Shown: positions 1 to 14,800 of the stretch, piece by piece
Layout of the letters: the number at the start of each line of letters is the position of its first letter
Numbering within the stretch: the first letter of the stretch is position 1
Assembly: GCA_028826165.1 (NCBI GenBank)
Contig: JAPDFW010000063.1
Coordinates: forward strand, 186,001-250,000
DNA from: Anaeramoeba ignava BMAN
Lineage: Eukaryota > Protista > Anaeramoebae
DNA length: 64,000 nucleotides
Direction of reading: 5' to 3'
The notes under the pieces: model-generated
Databases searched by the model: none
What the model was told of the DNA's origin: nothing
The model's input: only the letters and a program-made list of their open reading frames with translations
Program-made: the position numbers and the translations under genes

Positions 1-1818
1 TTGAAAGATAAGCTTGAAGAGCAATATCAAACAATTAAAAATTTGGAAGAAGAAAATAATTCGTTGAAAGAAAAAGTGGAATCAGCAATCAAAGCAATTG
101 AGGAAGAAAAGGGAATAAGAGAAGAAACCGAAGAGGAAAATGAAAAATTGGAAGGAGTTATTAGTGATTTGCGAAAGGAAATTGAGGAGTTAAAGAAACA
201 AATAGAAGAAGCGCTCAATGTTGAACCCCAAATAATAATTCACGAGCCAGACCCAATTATTCCTGAAAGAGATGTTGATATTCTCGAGAAGGAATTGTCA
301 GAATACATCAATTTGCGGTTGAAATTCGATCGCGATTTAATCAGTGTGCTTCCTATTGGAACAAAATCCGCGGATCTTTTGCAAGCAGCAAAAAGCGGTG
401 TTTTACTTTGCAAGTTAATTAATGATAGTTTCCCTTCGACAATTGACAGTAGGGCTATCAATTATGAAATCACCGATGAATCCGCACTTGAAAATCACAA
501 TTTGTGTGTTAATTCGGCAAAATGGATTGGATGTAATGTTGTTGGAATCGAATCACAATCGCTATTGAATGGCGATGAATCATCGATATTGCAATTGACT
601 TGGGAAATTATCAAAGTTGGATTGTTTTCTCAACTCACAATCACAAAACATCCAGAGATTCTTGTTTTATTCGATGAAAACAACACAGGTCCAACTCAAA
701 AACTAGTTGAGGAAATCAATAAAATTCCGCCAGAAAATATTCTTTTGAAATGGATCAACTACCACATTCACAAAGCTGGCGACAAAAGAAACATACAGAA
801 TTTTTCAGGGGATCTTCGCGAACCAAGTGCGTTTGCAATTTTGATGAACCAATTAAGTCCTCAATTGTGTCCACTTGATGAATTTACAAAAGAAACAGAC
901 ATCGATATTCAAGCCAAAGAAATTGAGAAATTCGCATCAAGTTTGGGATGCAAAGAATTTGTTTCCGCGCAAGCAATCGTATCAGGAAGATACGAGCAAC
1001 TAAACATTGCGTTTCTTGCGCTTTTATTTCATACTCGGTCGGGATTATCAATCTCAAAAGAACAAGCTCAAAAAATTGCGTTTGATGACCGCGATCGAGC
1101 AGGAACACGTGAAGAACGCGCTTTTAGAATGTGGATCAACAGCATGGGAATCGAACCTAAGGTGTATGATCTTTATCATGATTTGCGAGACGGGCTGATT
1201 ATTCTTAAGGTTATCGATAAAATCGAACCCGGACTTGTAAACTGGAAAAAAGTCAATTTGGATCCAATTAACGTTTTTAAAGAAGTTGAAAATTGCAATT
1301 ATGTTATTGATTTGGGAAAATTACTTCGTTTGCATTTGGTCAACATTTCGGGACAAAATATTCATGAAGGAAATAGAACATTAATTCTTGGGTTTATTTG
1401 GCAAGCAATGGAATATCACATCAAAGCAATTCTTACAAAATTGAAGGTTATTCGATCCGGAAGAATAACGGATCGTGATATGGTTGGCTGGGCAAATAAA
1501 AAAGTGGAATCCGCAGGAAAACAATCCAAAATTATTAGCTTTAAAGATCGCTCACTTAAAACTGGCATTTTTTTGATTGATTTGGTTTATTCAGTTTCTC
1601 CTAAAGCTGTCAATTATAATTTCGTTCAAAGTGGAAAATCTGATGAAGAATGTATGAATAATGCTCTTTATGCTATTTCGCTTTGCAGAAAAATTGGTGC
1701 TTCTATTTTTGTTTTACCTGAAGATATTGTTGAAGTTAAACCGAAAATGCTTTTAACTGTTGTTGGGGAATTGATGAGAATTGATAAATTAATTAAGAGC
1801 AAAATGGAACAAAAATAA
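1..1818 (+). CDS. Fimbrin/plastin-like actin-bundling protein (tandem CH domains) with N-terminal coiled coil; 5'-truncated by window edge
   Basis: Fimbrin ABD motifs GVLLCKLIN...TIDSRAIN, ENHNLCVNSAKWIGC, PENILLKWINYH, GTREERAFRMWINSMG, NALYAISLCRKIGASIFVLPEDIVEVKPKM; Glu/Lys-rich heptads at the N-terminus. Confidence 0.9.
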   Translation: MKDKLEEQYQTIKNLEEENNSLKEKVESAIKAIEEEKGIREETEEENEKLEGVISDLRKEIEELKKQIEEALNVEPQIIIHEPDPIIPERDVDILEKELSEYINLRLKFDRDLISVLPIGTKSADLLQAAKSGVLLCKLINDSFPSTIDSRAINYEITDESALENHNLCVNSAKWIGCNVVGIESQSLLNGDESSILQLTWEIIKVGLFSQLTITKHPEILVLFDENNTGPTQKLVEEINKIPPENILLKWINYHIHKAGDKRNIQNFSGDLREPSAFAILMNQLSPQLCPLDEFTKETDIDIQAKEIEKFASSLGCKEFVSAQAIVSGRYEQLNIAFLALLFHTRSGLSISKEQAQKIAFDDRDRAGTREERAFRMWINSMGIEPKVYDLYHDLRDGLIILKVIDKIEPGLVNWKKVNLDPINVFKEVENCNYVIDLGKLLRLHLVNISGQNIHEGNRTLILGFIWQAMEYHIKAILTKLKVIRSGRITDRDMVGWANKKVESAGKQSKIISFKDRSLKTGIFLIDLVYSVSPKAVNYNFVQSGKSDEECMNNALYAISLCRKIGASIFVLPEDIVEVKPKMLLTVVGELMRIDKLIKSKMEQK

Positions 1819-2090: not shown

Positions 2091-5000
2091 ATGCAAGAAA
2101 ATAAAGAAAATAAAAGTAAGAAAGAAAAAATATAATAAAAAAATTTAAAATTTGAATAAAAATTAAATATAAAAATTTTAATTTAAAAGTAAGAGAAATA
2201 CTTGAAAAAAGAAATCAAGAACTTTGTTTTATTCAAGCAGTTGATTTGAATAAAAATAATAAATCAATTGAAAGCTTTTTTATTTTAACAGATTGTCAAA
2301 TAATTTTAGTTAAAAAAAAGAAAATTCTTTCAAGAAAGAAAATATCATTATCAAAACCAAATCATTTATTCAATTTACAAAAAATTAATTCACCAGATAA
2401 TCTTCATGTTTGTTTTTATAAACTAAAACTTAAATTTTAAATTTAAATTTAAAGAAAAAAAAAAGATGATTATTTGAACTAATAATTTGATCTCCTTTTA
2501 TTTTAATTTAAAATCAATTTAAAAAATTTCGAAATTTTAAAATATTCCAAATAACAAATCTTGTTGCATGCTTCTATAATATATTCTTTCTTCAAAAAGT
2601 GTGCATTATTATTTTCAAATATTACAATTTCTTTTACATCAAATCAAACTGATAAAATAATCGAAAAAATTCATCGACAATATCGGAAAATTACGCAAGG
2701 ATTCCCACGCACACACGGGTTTGAGATGGAGATTGGACCGCAAAAACGGATGGAACGGATTGGAGAGAGTTTGATGGATATGAGCGGTAATGAAAAAATA
2801 AAAGCAAAAAACGGATATAAAAAAGATAAATTAACAACAAAACACATGATCAACAAAATAAAATGCAAAAAAATATAGATGAGGAAATCAATCCTGGACA
2901 TGGGTTCCTCGATACATATAGAGCATATTGTCTGCTCGATGGGATTATGCCATCGACACAGTTTATTCATTATATAAAAACACTTTTACAACGAAAGAAA
3001 ATATATCACCATTTAGATTTGACGAAATTTCCAGGAATAAAATATGATCATAAGAGCCCACAATTCCTTGATTTGCGCGCTGTTTTCAACGCGTTGAGAT
3101 ATAACACATGGTTTCGCGAACTCAGTTTGAATGAGAAGTCAAGAAAAGAAGCAGTTTTTTTGATCTCAGAAATTTTGAAAGACAACAAGTCGCTTGTTTC
3201 AATTAATATTTCTGGATTAGGGAGTACATGTTTGAATGATATATCAAAAGCGCTTGAAAGTAATGAGAACTCTGCGGTAAAGAATCTGTATGCAGCGGGG
3301 AATATTATTAATGAAAAAACAGTTACAGAGTTTGCAAATTCGTTAGTTTCAAGAAAAACGGGTCTTACGGTTCTTGATATTGGAGACTGTGAGATGTCTG
3401 TCAAGACAAGTACTCTTCTTTTCTCTTTCTTTTCCAATGCGACTGTGTTCTCGTCTAGTCTTCGCAGGCTGCGGATCGACGGGAATAATCTCGGCATTCC
3501 TGGAACCATTTCTCTTAATGCTTGGTTACAATCAACAGCATCGCAATCAAGCCACAAGATCACTCACTTGTCACTTTCACGCACAGATTGTTCTCTTACT
3601 AAACTCATTCCCGATCTCCAATTATTTGATGATTCGATCATGAACCTGTCACTTTCTTTTAATGATTTAAGTGATCTTTCAACTGCTTCTCAACTTGCAA
3701 ATTTCATCACAAATTCTTTTGTTTTACAGAACTTGGATATTTCTTATGCAAAAATCTCTTTAAACGGTTTTGAGTTGATCATCGATTCCCTCATTTCCAA
3801 CAAGAAGCTCACAAGGTTCTCAATCAACATCAGCGGGAACAATCTCGGCACAAAAGGTGCTGAGATCATCTCCACAAAACTTTTTAACGCCCGCATGATT
3901 GAAAGTCTTATTCTTGATGAAAATAATCTTGGTGATTCTGGTATCGCCCTCATTTCCGCATCGATGATCACTCATCCAAGTCTTAAACGCTTGTCTCTCG
4001 CCCGCAATATCAAAGGCGGATCAACTTGCTCTGCTTCTCCCTCAAAACTTGCTTTGCTTGTTTCTGTAAATCAGGTCATCCAAAACCTCGATCTTTCTGG
4101 TGGAAAAGATTTCTTCTTCGGAAAATCTCTTTTTGATTTCTTTAAAGCTTTTGCCAGTTCAAAATCTATCAAACGGCTAAATATTGAAAATAATAAAATT
4201 GGTGATCAAGGAATCCAAATTCTTGCTGAAAGTCTTAAGAAAAATCAATCCCTTGTTTCTCTTTTTTGGGATGGAAATGATCTTACTCTTCAATCAATTG
4301 AATATATGTATTCTGCTTTGTTTGAAAATCAAACTTTATCTCATCTTCCTATTCCTGAAAACGATATGAAACGATTCCAAAAGAAAAAAGACCAGGAATC
4401 TCTCCATGTTTTCTTTTCTCAAATCTCGGAAAAATTACTCAAAAACCAAAAGAAACAATTTTTTCTTGAAAAAATAAAACGTCAAGAAAAACAAAAAAAA
4501 GTTCAAAAAATCAAACAATATTTGGCTAATAAATCTCCTCAAGATTTTGCAGGAAACACAAGCTTAACTCCAAGACCACTTAAAAAGAAAAATCTCAGTT
4601 TCCAAATGCCCAAAAATTTCCTTGATTTAGCAAATCAAGAAAATAAAGAAAATCAAAATCAAAATCAAAATCAAAATCTAATTCAAATTCAAAATCAAAA
4701 TCAAAATCAAAATCAAATTCAAATTCAAAATGAAAATCAAAATCAAATTCAAAATGATGAAGATGAAGATGAAAATGAAGATGATGAAACTGATAAAGAA
4801 ATTGATCAAGAAACTCCAAAAATATCTCGAAAAATTGATTTAACTTTAGATTTAGATTTAAACTTAAATTTCAATTCAAACTTAAATTTCAATTCTCCAA
4901 AAAATACTAAATTTGTAAACGAATTATTTAGTCCACACACACTTTCAAGTGAAAAATCTCCAAAATCTCCAAAAAACTTTGATCTCTTAAGAGAAGATGA

Positions 5001-7785
5001 TAGTTTTGCTGATAGTTTTGGAGACGATTCATCACCAACAATTTCGATTTCTCGAGAATTTCGAAGTCGTTCAAATTCAGCAAAACAACCAAACTCAAAA
5101 ACATTTTTGGATCCAAATAACGCAAATGATTCATCCTCTTTTTATGCACTATTATCATCAAAACCACTAGATCAATTAGTTCAACCTATGTATGGTCAAT
5201 ACAGCACAAGAAGAACAAAAGCACATGACTCAGTTCCTCCAAATTACAAAGAACTTTCGAATCAAAATGAATTTTCTTATAAGGATTTATCTAATCTTCT
5301 TGATGAAATTGATTCCCAACAAAACAAACCCAAACCCAAACCCAAAGCCAAACCCAAGCAATCACAACCTCCTCAACTTCTGAAATTAAAATCTATTAGC
5401 AATTTTGAGTCAAGACAAGCTCCTTCTTTACTTGATGAAAATCTTATTATAAAAGAAATGGAACCAATGAATGAAAATTTCCGAAAAATTTTAACAACAA
5501 AACCACTTAAAGAAATCAAAAAGTTAATTTCATCCAAAAAAATACAAGTGCATTCAATTTACGATCCAGAATCACGTTCACTTCCTCTTCATTTTGCCTG
5601 CGATATTGGAAACGCAGAATTACTCTCTTTTCTTTTAATTGAAAAATGTTCTCAATTCGTCAATTTTCGCGATAATGCCGGATTATCTCCTTTGCACAGA
5701 CTCATGCATAAATATCTCAATGGCGACTGCTTGATTCTTCTTTATGACTATGGAGCAGACCTAAATATCAAGGACAAACGCGGATGGACTCCGCTTCAAG
5801 TATGTATTAGCCAATTCCAAAAAGAAACAAATTCAACATCAACTCAAAAAAATTCAACTCAAAATATCAAAAAAAATGAAATTGATCCACGAATCCAAAT
5901 GATTGATTTGCTTGTTGAAAAAGGCGCAGATCCGAATTCAGAAGATTCAAAAGGATGGAATGCTTTCCATCGAGCAGCTTCAAAAGGCTTTTTGGAAGCA
6001 TTGAAAATATTCATCAACTCAAATATTGATGTCAATTCTGTTGATTTCAATAAATCGACTGCTCTTCATAAATGCGCAAGAAATGGACATTCAGATTGCG
6101 TCCAATTTCTCATCCAAAAAGGAGCCATCCCCAATTTGAAAGACAAAACGGATCAAACCCCTTTGGATCTTGCGCTTATTTATGGTCACGATTCCTGTGT
6201 TGAACTTCTGCAAAAATTCTATTTGAATGAGAACGAAAATTTACATGAAACTTCTATTGAAAATTTGGATTTAAATTTGAATGAAAATTTGCATGAAACT
6301 TCAATCGATAATTTAAATGAATTGGAAAATTACATCCAAAATGAAAATGATGAGAATTTCATCAGAAATAATCTTGATGAAGACTCTTCAGAAAAAGATG
6401 AATTTTCAAATATTCAAAATGAAATGAAAGAAAATCAATCCCAGTCAAATATTTCTATTCTTGATAACACAACCCCGAATAAGGACTCCATTGACGGTCA
6501 AGAGCAAAATATCAAATTAACTGTCGAAGTTCTTGATACAATCCCCAATTTTGACGAGAGATTATTTGCCAAATCAATTACAAAATCAAGAACTTTCAAC
6601 ATTTGCATTTTAGGCACACACGAAAGTGGCAAAACCAAACTTGTGGAAAGACTAATTATGCACAGATTCAACGAAGAAACAAAATCATATGAAATTGAGT
6701 CGAAATATCAAAAAATTATGCTTATTAACAAACTTGAAATGCTTTTGAATATTGTGGATGTTTCCGGTGACGAAATTTACATGCCGTTTCTCAGCAAGTG
6801 GATCAACTCAGTCGATGGGTTTATAGTCACATTTTCCGCAACAGATAGTCTGCAAATGATCCATGATCTCGAAAACAAAATCTTGTTCCGAATTCATCAA
6901 TTTAAAAAACACTTGAAAAAAATCCCACTTGTTGTTGCTTGTCTGAAATATGATCTTTTTAATAAAGACTTTTTGGATCAAAATAAAGAAAATAAAGATC
7001 TGAAAATGATTCAGGAATCAATTGAAGAAGGCAAAAAAATCAGTCAGAAATATAACTATCCGTTTATTCAAATTTCTTCCAAATTGAATTCAAATGTAAA
7101 TAAAGTGTTTTCTTTAATTGTCAAAGAAATGTACCGAATTTACGAACGAGCAGAAGATATCCAGCATGAAGAAGAAAAAATGCGGGAGAAAAGAGAGCAC
7201 CAAATCAAAATGCGTCAAAAACGAAGAGAAGCAAGAATACGCAAAAAAATCGAATATGAAAATCAACAAAGTCAATCCAAAAATTCAAATAAAAAATCAA
7301 ATACAAAATCAAATACAAAACCAATCGAGAATATTTTTTCTCCTCAAAAAACAAACGATTCTTTTATCGAACTTTCCAGTCAATCATTAGTTCCTTTCCA
7401 TTTACTAATAACATCCACTGAATGTCGTTATTGGTTTGAACAATTTTTATGTCAAGAATTTGCTGAAGAAAATTTACTCTTTTATTTTGCTGTTCAGAAA
7501 TGGAAAAATATTCCAAACGAAGAAGCTGGGTTAATTTCACTTGGAGCTAAGAAGATTTACGAGGAATTCATCTCTCCAAATGCTGAACTTGAAATCAATA
7601 TTGATGGAAATACAAAAAATCAAATCAAAATTTTAATTGATCAAGGAAAATTCACAAAATCTCTTTTTGATACCCCTTTGAAACTTGTTTTGGAATTGTT
7701 GCAAAATCATTGCTATATTGATTTTATTCGTAGTGCTTATTATAATAAAATGGTTGAATCTCAAAAATTTCTTTTCGAAAAATGA
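2091..7785 (+). CDS. Multidomain signalling protein: CARMIL-like PH + RI-type LRRs + low-complexity linker + ankyrin repeats + Ras-like small GTPase domain + coiled coil + RGS domain
   Basis: Spliced model: exons 2091-2115, 2190-2407, 2600-2786, 2879-7785 (GT-AG introns that keep frame). LRRs (LNIENNKIGDQGIQILAESLKKNQSL) ~3080-4380; ankyrins (GWNAFHRAASKG, TALHKCARNGH) ~5580-6225; P-loop GTHESGKT and DVSG ~6590-7150; RGS (FEQFLCQEFAEENLLFYFAV...IYEEFISPNAELEINID) ~7390-7770. Confidence 0.85.
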
Positions 7786-8847: not shown

Positions 8848-11800
8848 ATGAATTCTGTTGTTAATTTATTCAAATATTATATTTTAAATTCTCCAAATCA
8901 TTTCATTTCTTTTCTTTTTTCAAAAACTTTAGGAAATTTTATTGAATCAACAAATTCTGAAAATTTTGAATATAATTTTACAAACTCTCATTTTAATTTA
9001 TTAATAAAAAAATTAAATTTCCTTCAAAAAGTAAAAAAAAAAGAAAGAATTTAATTTAATTTAAATTTAAAAAAAAAAAACTTCAAAAATTAAAAAAGAA
9101 ATATCAAAATTTTAAATTAGATAATTAATGAAAAATTAAATTATTTGCAAATTCCTTTAAAATTTTGTACTGGATTTCTTTCTGGAGTTGAAATTTCAAT
9201 TCCAACTTCTTTAAATGGATGTTTTATTAGAATTGAAAAAATTGATTTAAAATTTGGTAATTTAAATTTAATTGAAAATTTAATTGAAAATTTAATTTAA
9301 AATTTAATTTGAATTTTAGAAATGAATAATAACAAAATGCAATCATTTAAATCTCCTCAAAAATCTAATAATATTGATAAGAAAGAAATTCAAGATGAAA
9401 ATTTTTCAGAAAATTTTTCCAATGAAAAGAACTCTTTTAACCACATTCTAATGAATATTATTCTTAATACAGAACTTTTTATTCATAAAATTAATTTTGT
9501 GGTTGATGTTTTTGATGAAGAAAAAAACTCAATTATTTTGGATATTGATTTTTTATCTTTAAAGCAATTTATATTTATTCAAAATGATGAGATTATAAAA
9601 TCTTTTACTCAAAATTTGAAAGATTTCTCTTTTCTTCATAGCGCATTATCTAGAAGAATCAAATTTAAAAAAATTTCAGTAAAAAATAAATCACAACAAA
9701 AGAAAAATGAGAATTAATTATTGATTTGGCAAAAAAAATATCAAAAAAAAAAAAAATAAAATAGATTTCAATCCAAAATTTAGAAAATCTCAAAACTTTA
9801 TTTATGATTCAAGGAGATTCAAATTTAATAGAAATTTTGGAGCATTTTAACAAAAATGTTGATAATAAACAGAAAATTTCATCTCAAAACAATTCAAATT
9901 TTCCAATTATTATAAAAGCTGTAATTGATAATATTTTCATTCAATTTGATGAATCTACTTTGGAGAAATTATCTAAAATTATCACAAACACATTGAAGAA
10001 ATTTGAAATTATACTTCAAGAAGAAATCAACAACGAAGAAAATTCAAAAATCAATGAAATTAATAAATCCTTCTCTGAATTTCAAAATAATAATAATAAT
10101 AACAACCAATCAGAAGTTTATCAATTTTTAATAAATCAAAAGAAAATGCAAAAAGAGCAATTGGATGAACTTACCCAATCAATTCATGATATAATATATA
10201 TACAATCAAGAAATCAAACAGACACAAACGAATCAGAATTTTCTGAAGAAAACTCTTTGAATCTTCGATTGGATTTTCATCTTGACAATCTCTCAATTTT
10301 CTATGTTTATGATCAATCTTGGATTGATTTATTTCAACCAAAAAATAGAGAAGTTGCAAATTTTGAGTTTGCTCATTTCCATTTTAAAAAAATCACCTTT
10401 AATTTGGAAAAGGCAATACAGCAATATATTAAATTCTCATTTGAGGATATTTTGGTTCAAGAAAATCTTAAAAAAAATGGAACACTTTATAAAATTGAAG
10501 TTATTAAATTTCTTCAAGAGAGAAAAATTGAAGAAGAAAATTTGCAACGTTTTAATTTGAAAATGAAAATAAATAAATTTTTAAAAGAAAATACAATTGA
10601 GATTACTCTGGATTCTCTCAAAATGATATTCGATTTTAAAATGTTGATTAGATGGATTCCTTTGTTAAGGTTTATAAACAATAAATTTAATCAAAATCAA
10701 GATGAAAATGAAAATCAAAATCAAAATCAAAATCAAAATCAAAATGAAAGAGCCAAAATGAAATTCACAATTTCACCTTTTAATATACAATGCGAAATCC
10801 CAATATTTACTGAAAGAGAACCTCATTTTGAAGATTATTATAATTATGAACAAATTTTGTTGTTAAATATCAAAGATTTGCAAATATTCAATGAAGAAAA
10901 TGGTGAAAATCTAAATTTTTCATTTAAATATATGAAAGGATATTTTACCGATAAATTATTCAAAGAAATCCAAAATGAAGATTTTTTCAACTTGATTATC
11001 AATGGTATTTTTAAAGAAGATCAAGAATTTATTGATCCTTACTTTACATTTAAAATGAAAAGTCTCAAAGATCTCCAAGAAATTGATTCAGAAAAGCTTG
11101 ACAAAATCAAATTCCAAAATGATAATAGAAAGGATTATTTTGGAAATTATGATTACTTACCCATTTTTGGAGATGATTCTGATTTTATTTCTCAATCGGA
11201 AGAAGTTTTGAAATACACAAAAATCACAATGGAACTAAATTTCCCATTTGTTAAATTTGCTCTTCTCCAATCAGATGTTTCTCTTTTATTAGACTTCTTT
11301 TTGTTTCTTGATTTATTTTCAACCAAATTGGATCAAGAATTATTCCCAAATGAAAATGAACTCAGCAAAAGGAAAATTCCACCAACAAAATTTCTTCTCA
11401 AAATGAATATGGATAAGGTTGTTGTTGTATTTGAGGAGCATCAAGAAAATTATTACAAAAAAGCTTTACTTCCAGGAAGACATTCTTACGAATTTGAATT
11501 TTCTCAAGTTTTTGGAATTAATATTACAAATTTTTTGAGTGACAAACTAATTTATTTCTTTATAAAATCACAAGATGTTTTTCTAAGTGATATATATCGG
11601 GATTATCAACATAATAATAATAACAATAATAACAATAATAACAATAACCAAGACCAAAATGTAAAGGATATCATTTTGTCACGAATCCCATTGAAGAAAA
11701 AATTTGAAAAGCAAGAAATGATTACTTTTTCAGTCATTCTCAATTCAAGTCAAAATCATCTGAATAAAAGTGATTTTAGTAAAGAATTGATCCTCAATTT

Positions 11801-14800
11801 AAATATCCAACATTTCAAATATTCTTATTATGTTGGCACTTCATTTCTCTCGAGATTTGTAGATTTTATGAACACTATTATCGATGAAAATGATGCCAAA
11901 GATTATTTATTGAATATTAATAACAGAAACCAACCTATTCAAAAAGCAATTCATTTCAATATCACACTCAAAGATTTTGCATTTGAATATTTTCCAATTA
12001 ACATTTCACCTGCAATAGCTTTAGTCTTTGGATATTTTAATTTTTATCAACGAATAATGCAAGGTTCATCAGCAATTAAACTTAATTTATTGAGTGAGAA
12101 TATTAATGGAGTTTTAATTGATGATCATTTCGAACTTTTGTTTTCAAATGAAGGCAACAATTCATTAGAATATTACATTTTACTTGGATTTCTTCCCATT
12201 CTTCATTGTGATGATTTGAAGATTGATATAATAATAACCAAAACAGATTCAAATTCAAATTCAAATTTAAATTTAAACTCAAATTTCAAATCAGGTTTAT
12301 TGACTGAAATTGACGCAAGTGAAAATGGATTAGAATCTGAAATGTGTTCTGATTCTCTAGCTTTTGTGTTGAATTTGTTTGATCATTTAAATTATGGATA
12401 TGATTTGGAAAAACAATTTCAACCAGTTTTCCCAGAAATTGAAGTTAAAAGTTCTGATAAAGGATTAGATGAATTAGAACAGGAAGATTTGTATGAAAAT
12501 TGGAATGAAATTGAAAATGAAAATGAAAATGAAAATGAAAATGAAAATGAAATTGGAAAAGGAATTGAAATGAAAAACCATTTGGATCAACCATTTCAAA
12601 TTAAGCTTTATGAAAACCCTTTACAAAATATCGAGAAAAATGATGAAATTTATCAGGTTGATGAATATACAGATTATACTGTTTTATGGAAAGACGATGA
12701 TTCTATTGGAGATATTAAACCAAGCTTCCGAGATTATTTAAGTATTTCATATTTATGGGAAGACCAAATTGAAGAAGATTTTCCTGTTGAAAAAGCAAAT
12801 GGAATTATCAAGTTGAAAAATATTTCAGGATTTATTCGTCTTTATGGAGGATATGATTGGGAAACAAAAAAAAATCAAGAAGAAGATGATAAAGAAATTG
12901 AAAAGATTGAACATTATAAAGAATTGGAAGAAAAAATTGAAGATATATTTGAATTTGATGATGCATTTATGAGATATTCATTAGAACTTGAAAAAAGTCT
13001 TGAAAAAAATCAAGATGATGAAAAAAACGATGAAGATATTGAAGAATTTGAGGATGTTTTCACAATTCAACAAATTGAGCAAGAAAATTATTATTCTTAT
13101 CTAAAACCATCAAAAAAAGAATCAAAATCAAGAAAATATCTTCTTGAAAAATTAATTGAGGAAAATTTAATTCAAAACAAATATTTACACAAAACTAAAC
13201 TTCAAAAAAGTCAGAGAACTCAAGATTATTTGGATTTTATTTTTGAAGAAGGATCTCTTGAGTTATTTACATTTCCAAACAAAGAAATTCACAAACTTTG
13301 TCTTGATCTTAAAATCAAGAATTTATTAATTGAAGATCATATACAATCAAGTCAATATTTATCTTTATTAACTTATCAAACAAGATTTCGTGATAACAAA
13401 GATGAATTTATTCCAATGATTCATTTTAGATTCATGATAGTACGACCAAATCCACTAATAAAAACACAAATAATAGAAGCAACTGAAGAGTGGAGAATTC
13501 AAATACAAGTTCTTCCTGTTAGAATGAATATTGATATTCGTTCTTTAGATTTTTTAACTCAATATTTATCAAATCTGAATCAAGAACGAGAAAAAAACCA
13601 GAAAATATATAAAACAAAAGAGCCATTTATTCGTAAATTTTTAATTTTTAATTTTGAATTTTGAATTTTGAATTTTGAATTTTGAATTTTTAAATTTTAA
13701 TTTTTAATTTTGAATTTTGATATCAATAGAATCATTTTCGATTAGTAAATTATATGGAGATTTTTCAATTTCTTATCCTTTAAATGATACAGTATCTTTT
13801 GCAGTTAATCATATTATTATTAGACTTCCATCAGTTCATTTATTTGGAGTAAAAAACTTTGATTTGATTTGATTTAATATTTATTTAATATTTATTTAAT
13901 ATTTATTATTTATTTATTTAATATTTATTTAATATTGATTTAATATTGATTTAATATTGATTTAATATTGATTTAATATTGATTTAATATTTATTTAATA
14001 TTGATTTAATATTTATTTAATATTTATTTAATATTTATTTAATATTTAATATTTATTTAATATTTGATTTAATATTGATTTAATATTTATTTAATATTTA
14101 TTTAATATTTGATTTAATATTTATTTAATATTTATTTAATATTTATTTAATATTTATTTAATATTTATTTAATATTTATTTAATATTTATTTAATATTTA
14201 TTTATTATTTATTTAATATTTATTTAATATTTATTTAATATTTATTTAATATTTATTTAATATTGATTTAATATTGATTTAATATTTATTTAATATTTAT
14301 TTAATATTTATTTAATATTTATTTAATATTTATTTAATATTGATTTAATATTGATTTAATATTTATTTAATATTTATTTAATATTTATTTAATATTTATT
14401 TAATATTTATTTAATATTTATTTTATTTAATATTTATTTAATATTTATTTAATATTTATTTAATATTTATTTAATATTTATTTATTGATTTAATATTTAT
14501 TTAATATTTATTTTATTTATTTAATATTGATTTAATATTTATTTTATTTATTATTTATTTAATATTTATTTAATATTTTAATATTTATTTAATATTTATT
14601 TAATATTTATTTAATATTTATTTAATATTTATTTAATATTTATTTAATATTTATTTAATATTTATTTAATATTTATTTATTTATTTAATATTTATTTTAA
14701 TATTTATTTAATATTTATTTAATATTTATTTAATATTTATTTAATATTTATTTAATATTTATTTAATATTTATTTAATATTTATTTAATATTTATTTATT

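Follow-up and report, generated by a model that had tools for sequence, protein, structure and literature searches.

A gene in the protist Anaeramoeba ignava BMAN, an anaerobic amoeba, raises the question of what a protein may do when it begins with a CARMIL-type pleckstrin homology (PH) and leucine-rich repeat (LRR) region and ends with an RGS domain. The gene lies on the + strand at positions 2091-7785 of the window, which is the whole 64,000-nucleotide stretch of DNA that was analysed (assembly GCA_028826165.1, contig JAPDFW010000063.1, positions 186,001 to 250,000). It is a single gene of four exons with GT..AG introns in compatible phases, as read by hand from the three-frame translation, and its predicted product is one polypeptide of about 1780 residues. 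The PH-LRR half is followed by ankyrin repeats, a Ras-like GTPase domain and the RGS domain, and the gene belongs to a family present in both A. ignava and Anaeramoeba flamelloides; no other genus was found to have this domain order. We put it at slightly better than an even chance that the protein is a localised, scaffolded and membrane-anchored regulator, acting as terminator or organiser, of some G-alpha signalling.

The integrity of the gene is supported by its open frame and by transcript contigs. An open frame of 1640 codons extends on the + strand from 2863 to 7785, and open frames arising by chance are short here because the DNA around the gene has a G+C content of only 10-15% between genes, compared with 25-38% within them. 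Transcript evidence was taken from the contigs of X1, the only public run with a matching stretch, for which the kind of run is not recorded. In these contigs, 2408-2599 and 2787-2878 are missing to the exact base, with GT..AG ends, and coverage is otherwise gap-free over 2195-4635, 4796-6170 and 6172-7711, so that introns 2 and 3 are confirmed, exon 4 contains no further intron, and the gene is expressed in spliced form. One of the two contig breaks falls in an N/Q-coding repeat, which was skipped as a repeat, and the other at a variant site; both contigs flanking the repeat extend into it. An earlier note, made from the DNA letters alone, had described one uninterrupted long exon preceded by three small ones, and this description agrees with the open frame and the collinear contigs for exon 4 and with the contig joints for exons 2 and 3. 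Exon 1 is uncovered by the X1 contigs and is predicted; it is needed to supply the start codon that exon 2 lacks. Micro-exons of phase 1, 7-28 nt long, occur at the equivalent site in all four A. ignava paralogs, which are named here after their contigs (22 nt in C2, 28 nt in C24 and 7 nt in C115, the last in the GenBank model P0242; the window copy is C64). Furthermore, the intron after '..NLH' at the end of exon 2 is kept in all paralogs, and exon 2 is 40% identical to residues 10-81 of P0001, the product of the C57 paralog. Of 25 differences between X1 and the window, 23 are synonymous, where about 20% would be expected at random, and the frame is therefore under purifying selection from the LRR through the RGS domain. 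The coding N-Q/I-Q repeat itself occupies 4637-4795 within the linker and disrupts short-read contigs.

The first half of the protein resembles CARMIL, as had been suggested. The best PDB match of the first 541 residues encoded by exon 4 is CARMIL1 (9ec0, E 1e-30; 4k17, E 8e-28; phmmer), and the alignment pairs query residues 63-532 with CARMIL residues 212-681, a span that takes in the complete LRR domain and its C-cap. Ribonuclease inhibitor matches the same region more weakly (E 7e-17, phmmer against PDB), and Pfam LRR_6 is weak on the large exon. For the PH region, exons 2 and 3 fall at adjoining columns within the PH part of the family N-terminal alignment, and P0042, which lies in the same alignment register as the window exons, matches Pfam Carm_PH at 30.6 bits, above the cut-off. 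The fold of this half was examined in a stored relative, P0100, whose residues 1-680 were folded with the family alignment. The resulting model is confident (predicted local distance difference test score, pLDDT, 90; predicted template modelling score, pTM, 0.84) and begins with seven strands and one helix, from which a linker leads to a horseshoe of 16 repeats, with a 30-residue helix of pLDDT 70-79 after the LRR C-cap. Its top Foldseek match is mouse CARMIL1 residues 1-668 (E 3e-29, template modelling score 0.71-0.74, 695 columns), while ribonuclease inhibitor follows far behind (2.5e-12) and covers the LRR only.

The defining architecture of CARMIL and the membrane role of its PH domain have been described (PMC5491179), and it is against this architecture that the window protein has to be judged. 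No CPI motif, in strict or loose form, was found in the 21 family proteins, and Pfam CARMIL_C is absent from the window protein and from the whole A. ignava genome. The window protein is thus not a CARMIL; it comprises the PH, linker and LRR half without the capping-protein-binding half. The link to cortical actin proposed in the earlier note is not supported, given that the CPI/CSI region is missing from all 21 family members. A linker stretch of the form [ST]PRPxK, shared by the window copy and C115, was considered as a CPI motif and rejected, having no LxHxT part and no conservation. This stretch is found at about 4540-4570 of the window and at aa 731 of P0242, in a disordered linker in both cases, and may be a proline-directed site or a product of chance.

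The LRR type is also found well beyond this gene. About 18 loci of the A. ignava genome carry a full-length CARMIL-type LRR (e.g., C115:831888-833468, C1:1692383-1693966 and C92:86371-87936), of which five carry the Ank-Ras-RGS module and most others have different tails. Because so many genes combine it with various tails, the CARMIL-type LRR is a reusable cassette.

In the second half of the protein, the domain order LRR, ankyrin, Ras-like and RGS given previously is borne out by Pfam together with the CARMIL1 match in PDB. Pfam Ank_2 reaches 4e-35 on the large exon, and Pfam Ras (PF00071) matches at 63 bits (2.6e-17) over aa 1247-1424, compared with 34 bits for Pfam Roc; the best PDB matches of the GTPase domain are Ras, KRas and Rheb. 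An AlphaFold2 model of this half shows confident domains (pLDDT 80-96) separated by disordered linkers, with a GTPase of canonical strand and helix order and an all-helical RGS box. When the 781-residue Ank-Ras-RGS model was searched with Foldseek, only ankyrin proteins were returned, and nothing for the GTPase or RGS domain. The GTPase domain is followed by a charged helix of 47 residues.

The GTPase domain is divergent at the positions on which Ras catalysis depends. Family members retain the P-loop GxxxxGK[ST], DxxG, S[AS]K and the K.D of G4, the last with Leu for Asn in most of them, and the window copy reads GTHESGKT (G1), DVSG (G3), LKYD (G4, with Leu for Asn at position 116) and SSK (G5). 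Compared with KRas, positions 12/13 of the window copy are His-Glu, position 35 is Glu and position 61 is Asp. Gln61 was found in no family member among the 16 compared, Asp being commonest at this site and Glu, Ala, Ser or Lys occurring otherwise. Switch I reads P-T-I-E in seven A. flamelloides members and probably in the C24 copy too; the clade of the window gene has a switch I insertion and Glu replacing Thr35. Because the nucleotide-binding motifs are kept but Gln61 and Thr35 are replaced, the domain would be expected to bind nucleotide without canonical hydrolysis or switch I closure.

The RGS domain matches Pfam well above the curated score (PF00615, 76.8 bits against a cut-off of 23.9; 2.3e-21; aa 1512-1630 of the large exon). 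Its contacts with G-alpha, which we take to be the E87-N88 pair, N128, D163, S164 and R167 in RGS4 numbering from the RGS4-Gi-alpha-1 structure, were compared across the family. All 16 members share the E-N pair and the Asn128 equivalent, and 12 of them retain the Asp163 equivalent, ten with a D-S pair and two with D-C; the C115 paralog has the complete canonical D-S-Y-P-R-F. With regard to possible partners, at least 40 loci for G-alpha and about 45 for RGS proteins exceed the Pfam cut-offs in the A. ignava genome.

The gene is not unique. A genome search with the Ras-RGS part recovered five A. ignava paralogs with LRR-Ank-Ras-RGS, namely the window gene and long frames on C2, C57, C24 and C115, and all four domain types were found by Pfam in each of the further four. 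Together with about ten more members in A. flamelloides, this gives about 15 in the genus. A profile of the five Ras-RGS modules was run against 1.84 billion representative proteins, and among the best 150 matches those covering both domains of the full module came solely from A. ignava or A. flamelloides. In the same 150 matches, only two other proteins carry both Ras and RGS: P0161, an EH-Ras-RGS-SH2 protein from a JGI metagenome, and P0167, an RGS-Ras protein from a EukProt transcriptome, both of which look like independent fusions. In a tree of 16 members, the window gene is sister to the C2 copy (support 96/92), and both lie within a clade containing only A. ignava genes, with C57 and C24, whose sister is an A. 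flamelloides clade; C115 falls outside, and a clade apart from these is made up of seven A. flamelloides genes. From this topology, the family is older than the split of A. ignava from A. flamelloides and has expanded separately in each.

The GenBank names of the family members refer only to 'leucine-rich repeat', 'ankyrin repeat' or 'molting protein mlt-4', P0001 being named 'leucine-rich repeat isoform f [Anaeramoeba ignava]', and a word-based protein search was dominated by ankyrin proteins and recovered one paralog. The P0001 model also lacks 27 residues of the last PH strands, where the DNA reads through stops (C57:259500-267500, 1765-1944 and 2512-2700). In this paralog, exon 3 occurs again 700 bp upstream as a second copy riddled with stops, and exon 2 was not found within 2.5 kb. 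The N-terminus of the C57 paralog represents either an assembly frameshift or a decaying PH domain.

The coordinates of the exons and domains are collected in Table 1. Directly upstream of the gene, a frame that runs off the start of the window (1-1818, +) contains four calponin-homology domains (Pfam CH 228 bits) and resembles a fimbrin/plastin-like actin bundler. Downstream, a frame of 1286 aa at 9804-13664 (+) matches ATG2_CAD at 99 bits, as in an ATG2-like lipid-transfer protein.

Table 1. Exons of the gene and domains of its predicted product, by position in the window.
Feature	Position	Strand	Evidence and remarks
Exon 1	2091-2115	+	Predicted micro-exon with the start: ATG at 2091, GTAAG donor at 2116; phase 1, fitting exon 2
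Exon 2	2190-2407	+	First CARMIL-type PH strands and lysine-rich loop; ends in phase 0; contig joint 2407->2600, GT..AG
Exon 3	2600-2786	+	Last PH strands, PH C-terminal helix (to ~2696) and start of linker; ends in phase 1; contig joints on both sides
Exon 4	2879-7785	+	Open frame, stop codon 7783-7785 included; contigs collinear over 2878-4635, 4796-6170 and 6172-7711
CARMIL-type LRR domain, ribonuclease-inhibitor-like repeats and C-cap	3064-4473	+	phmmer against PDB
Low-complexity linker rich in N/Q/K/S	4495-5503	+	Composition; no Pfam match; no CPI motif
Ankyrin repeats, about six, with a disordered insertion in the third	5530-6237	+	Pfam Ank_2 120 bits; AlphaFold2 pLDDT 80-96; Foldseek ankyrin proteins
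Divergent Ras-family GTPase domain	6601-7134	+	Pfam Ras 63 bits; PDB matches; model
Long charged helix, possible coiled coil	7147-7287	+	Helix 570-616 of the model; kept in each of the five paralogs
RGS domain, closest to the R4 subfamily	7396-7752	+	Pfam RGS; best PDB matches RGS2, RGS5, RGS18 and RGS4

On the reading that we favour, the protein would be brought to a membrane by its CARMIL-type PH domain, which has a lysine-rich loop, together with the LRR horseshoe rigidly joined to it. These would also give partners a surface on which to dock, and the ankyrin repeats would provide a second one. Judging by its conserved contacts, the RGS domain would bind activated G-alpha and most likely speed GTP hydrolysis, for which possible substrates are present among the G-alpha loci of the genome. 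The Ras-like domain, to go by its motifs, would most likely act as a nucleotide-bound, slowly hydrolysing or non-hydrolysing module for regulation or interaction, and not as a cycling Ras, while the charged helix may dimerise the protein. Such a protein would not be a regulator of actin capping.

Several results weigh against a membrane-anchored regulator of this kind. Exons 2 and 3 of the window gene themselves give no significant match to Pfam Carm_PH, and a profile of the family PH region found no CARMIL among the PDB sequences, so that the PH assignment for the window protein rests on the alignment and on the modelled fold of a relative. No X1 contig bridges the N/Q repeat at 4636-4795. 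In the RGS domain of the window copy, Asp163, Ser164 and Arg167 are replaced by His, Cys and Asp, respectively, and the A. ignava clade formed by C64 (the window copy), C2, C57 and C24 has lost the Asp163 and D-S positions. Because the equivalents of Asp163 and Arg167 are lost, the activity of the window copy as a GTPase-activating protein (GAP) is plausible but uncertain, and may be weak or lost. In addition, we infer the lipid binding, the partners and the nucleotide state of the protein. The 'self-contained signalling hub' of the earlier note is for its part overstated: Ras and RGS domains are indeed both present, yet the one is without its catalytic Gln and switch I Thr and the other has lost two contacts with G-alpha.

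The same substitutions would suit the main rival, a pure scaffold or G-alpha effector that does no more than assemble complexes, with an RGS domain that binds without GAP activity and a pseudo-GTPase as its Ras-like domain. In GRK2 and axin, RGS-homology domains bind partners without a GAP role, and the window clade has lost the Asp163 and Arg167 equivalents as well as the switch I Thr, in a family that is without Gln61 throughout. Loss of GAP activity, with a change to a scaffold role, is on record for some RGS domains (PMC3971589). However, the E-N pair and the Asn128 equivalent, which are core catalytic contacts, remain invariant in the 16 members, and all nucleotide-binding motifs are kept under purifying selection; we therefore regard this explanation as possible but rather doubtful. 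More speculative, and in our view improbable, is the idea that the CARMIL-type PH-LRR unit is an ancient membrane-scaffold cassette, once independent and older than its role in actin capping, which Anaeramoeba combines with exchangeable output tails in about 18 genes, and that the nucleotide state of a hydrolysis-dead Ras-like domain here gates the adjacent RGS domain. If true, it would tie a small-GTPase-type control to the termination of G-alpha signals and represent a new kind of switch.

Other explanations concern what the protein is, as opposed to what its domains still do. A true CARMIL orthologue, regulating cortical actin capping protein with signalling domains added, would account for a PH-linker-LRR half that is nearer to CARMIL1 than to any other solved structure, and the fimbrin-like actin bundler upstream would fit it weakly, by position only; nevertheless, the lack of the CPI motif and of CARMIL_C, together with the occurrence of this LRR type in some 18 genes with various tails, makes it very unlikely. 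It is harder still to believe that two neighbouring genes, one CARMIL-like and one Ank-Ras-RGS, have been read together by accident. The absence of a single contig spanning 4636-4795 would permit this, but 4.9 kb of AT-rich DNA without a stop, the entry of both flanking contigs into the repeat, and the same single continuous frame in the five A. ignava paralogs and in the A. flamelloides protein models all speak for one gene. A Roco-type protein, in which a Roc GTPase controls the output domain through COR-mediated dimerisation, has in its favour the repeats N-terminal to the GTPase and the Pfam Roc match, and is close to untenable: the roughly 90 residues between GTPase and RGS are helix and disorder, COR-A finds nothing in the genome, and Ras scores far above Roc. 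The protein is not a Roco protein because it has no COR, and the earlier note was right to miss one.

No earlier description of the architecture was found, in agreement with the earlier note, but it fits the known shuffling of RGS domains in protists. Among the papers searched, 'CARMIL' and 'RGS domain' occur together in none, and the genome paper of Anaeramoeba is silent on RGS, heterotrimeric G proteins and CARMIL alike. In protists, fusions of RGS with LRR, ankyrin, Rho GTPase and other domains have arisen recurrently and independently, in a lineage-specific manner (de Mendoza et al., 2014; PMC3971589). The present order, with a CARMIL-type PH-LRR, is not named in that catalogue, for which Anaeramoeba had not then been sampled (PMC3971589). 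Domain shuffling as a general principle among RGS proteins is already known, and no long-standing question is opened by the present gene. What it adds to the lineage-specific RGS architectures is a family, conserved and expressed, with no fewer than 15 genes across two species. It also shows that CARMIL's N-terminal half occurs beyond the animals and amoebozoans in which CARMIL has been studied, without the capping-protein-binding half and attached to other outputs. Furthermore, the very large G-alpha and RGS repertoire of A. ignava is without a published analysis, and the natural variants of an RGS box beside a GTPase domain lacking Gln61 may be of use to G-protein biochemistry.

Among known systems, RGS12 and RGS14 also link G-alpha regulation to Ras-family signalling in one polypeptide, using Ras-binding domains and a GoLoco motif; the window protein has a Ras-like GTPase domain instead. 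P0161 and P0167 do combine a small GTPase with RGS in one protein, as here, but with other partners, in another order and with canonical Ras scores. The Roco proteins (LRRK2, DAPK1 and the Dictyostelium Rocos) are alike in placing LRR and ankyrin repeats before a GTPase and an output domain after it, whereas the window protein is without COR, has a GTPase nearer to Ras than to Roc, and has RGS in place of a kinase as its output. The R4-type proteins RGS2, RGS4, RGS5 and RGS18 provide the best PDB match of the RGS box and share the E-N pair and the Asn128 equivalent; they are small and single-domain, in contrast to a multidomain protein with His and Asp at the Asp163 and Arg167 positions. The best match of the PH-LRR half by both sequence and structure is CARMIL1/LRRC16A (4K17, 9EC0), with which it has in common a non-canonical PH domain, a rigid linker or N-cap, a 16-repeat LRR horseshoe of the ribonuclease inhibitor type and, in the model of P0100, a following helix. 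Where CARMIL1 continues with CPI/CSI and CARMIL_C, both absent here, and with a proline-rich tail, not evident here, the family carries ankyrin repeats, a Ras-like domain and an RGS domain instead.

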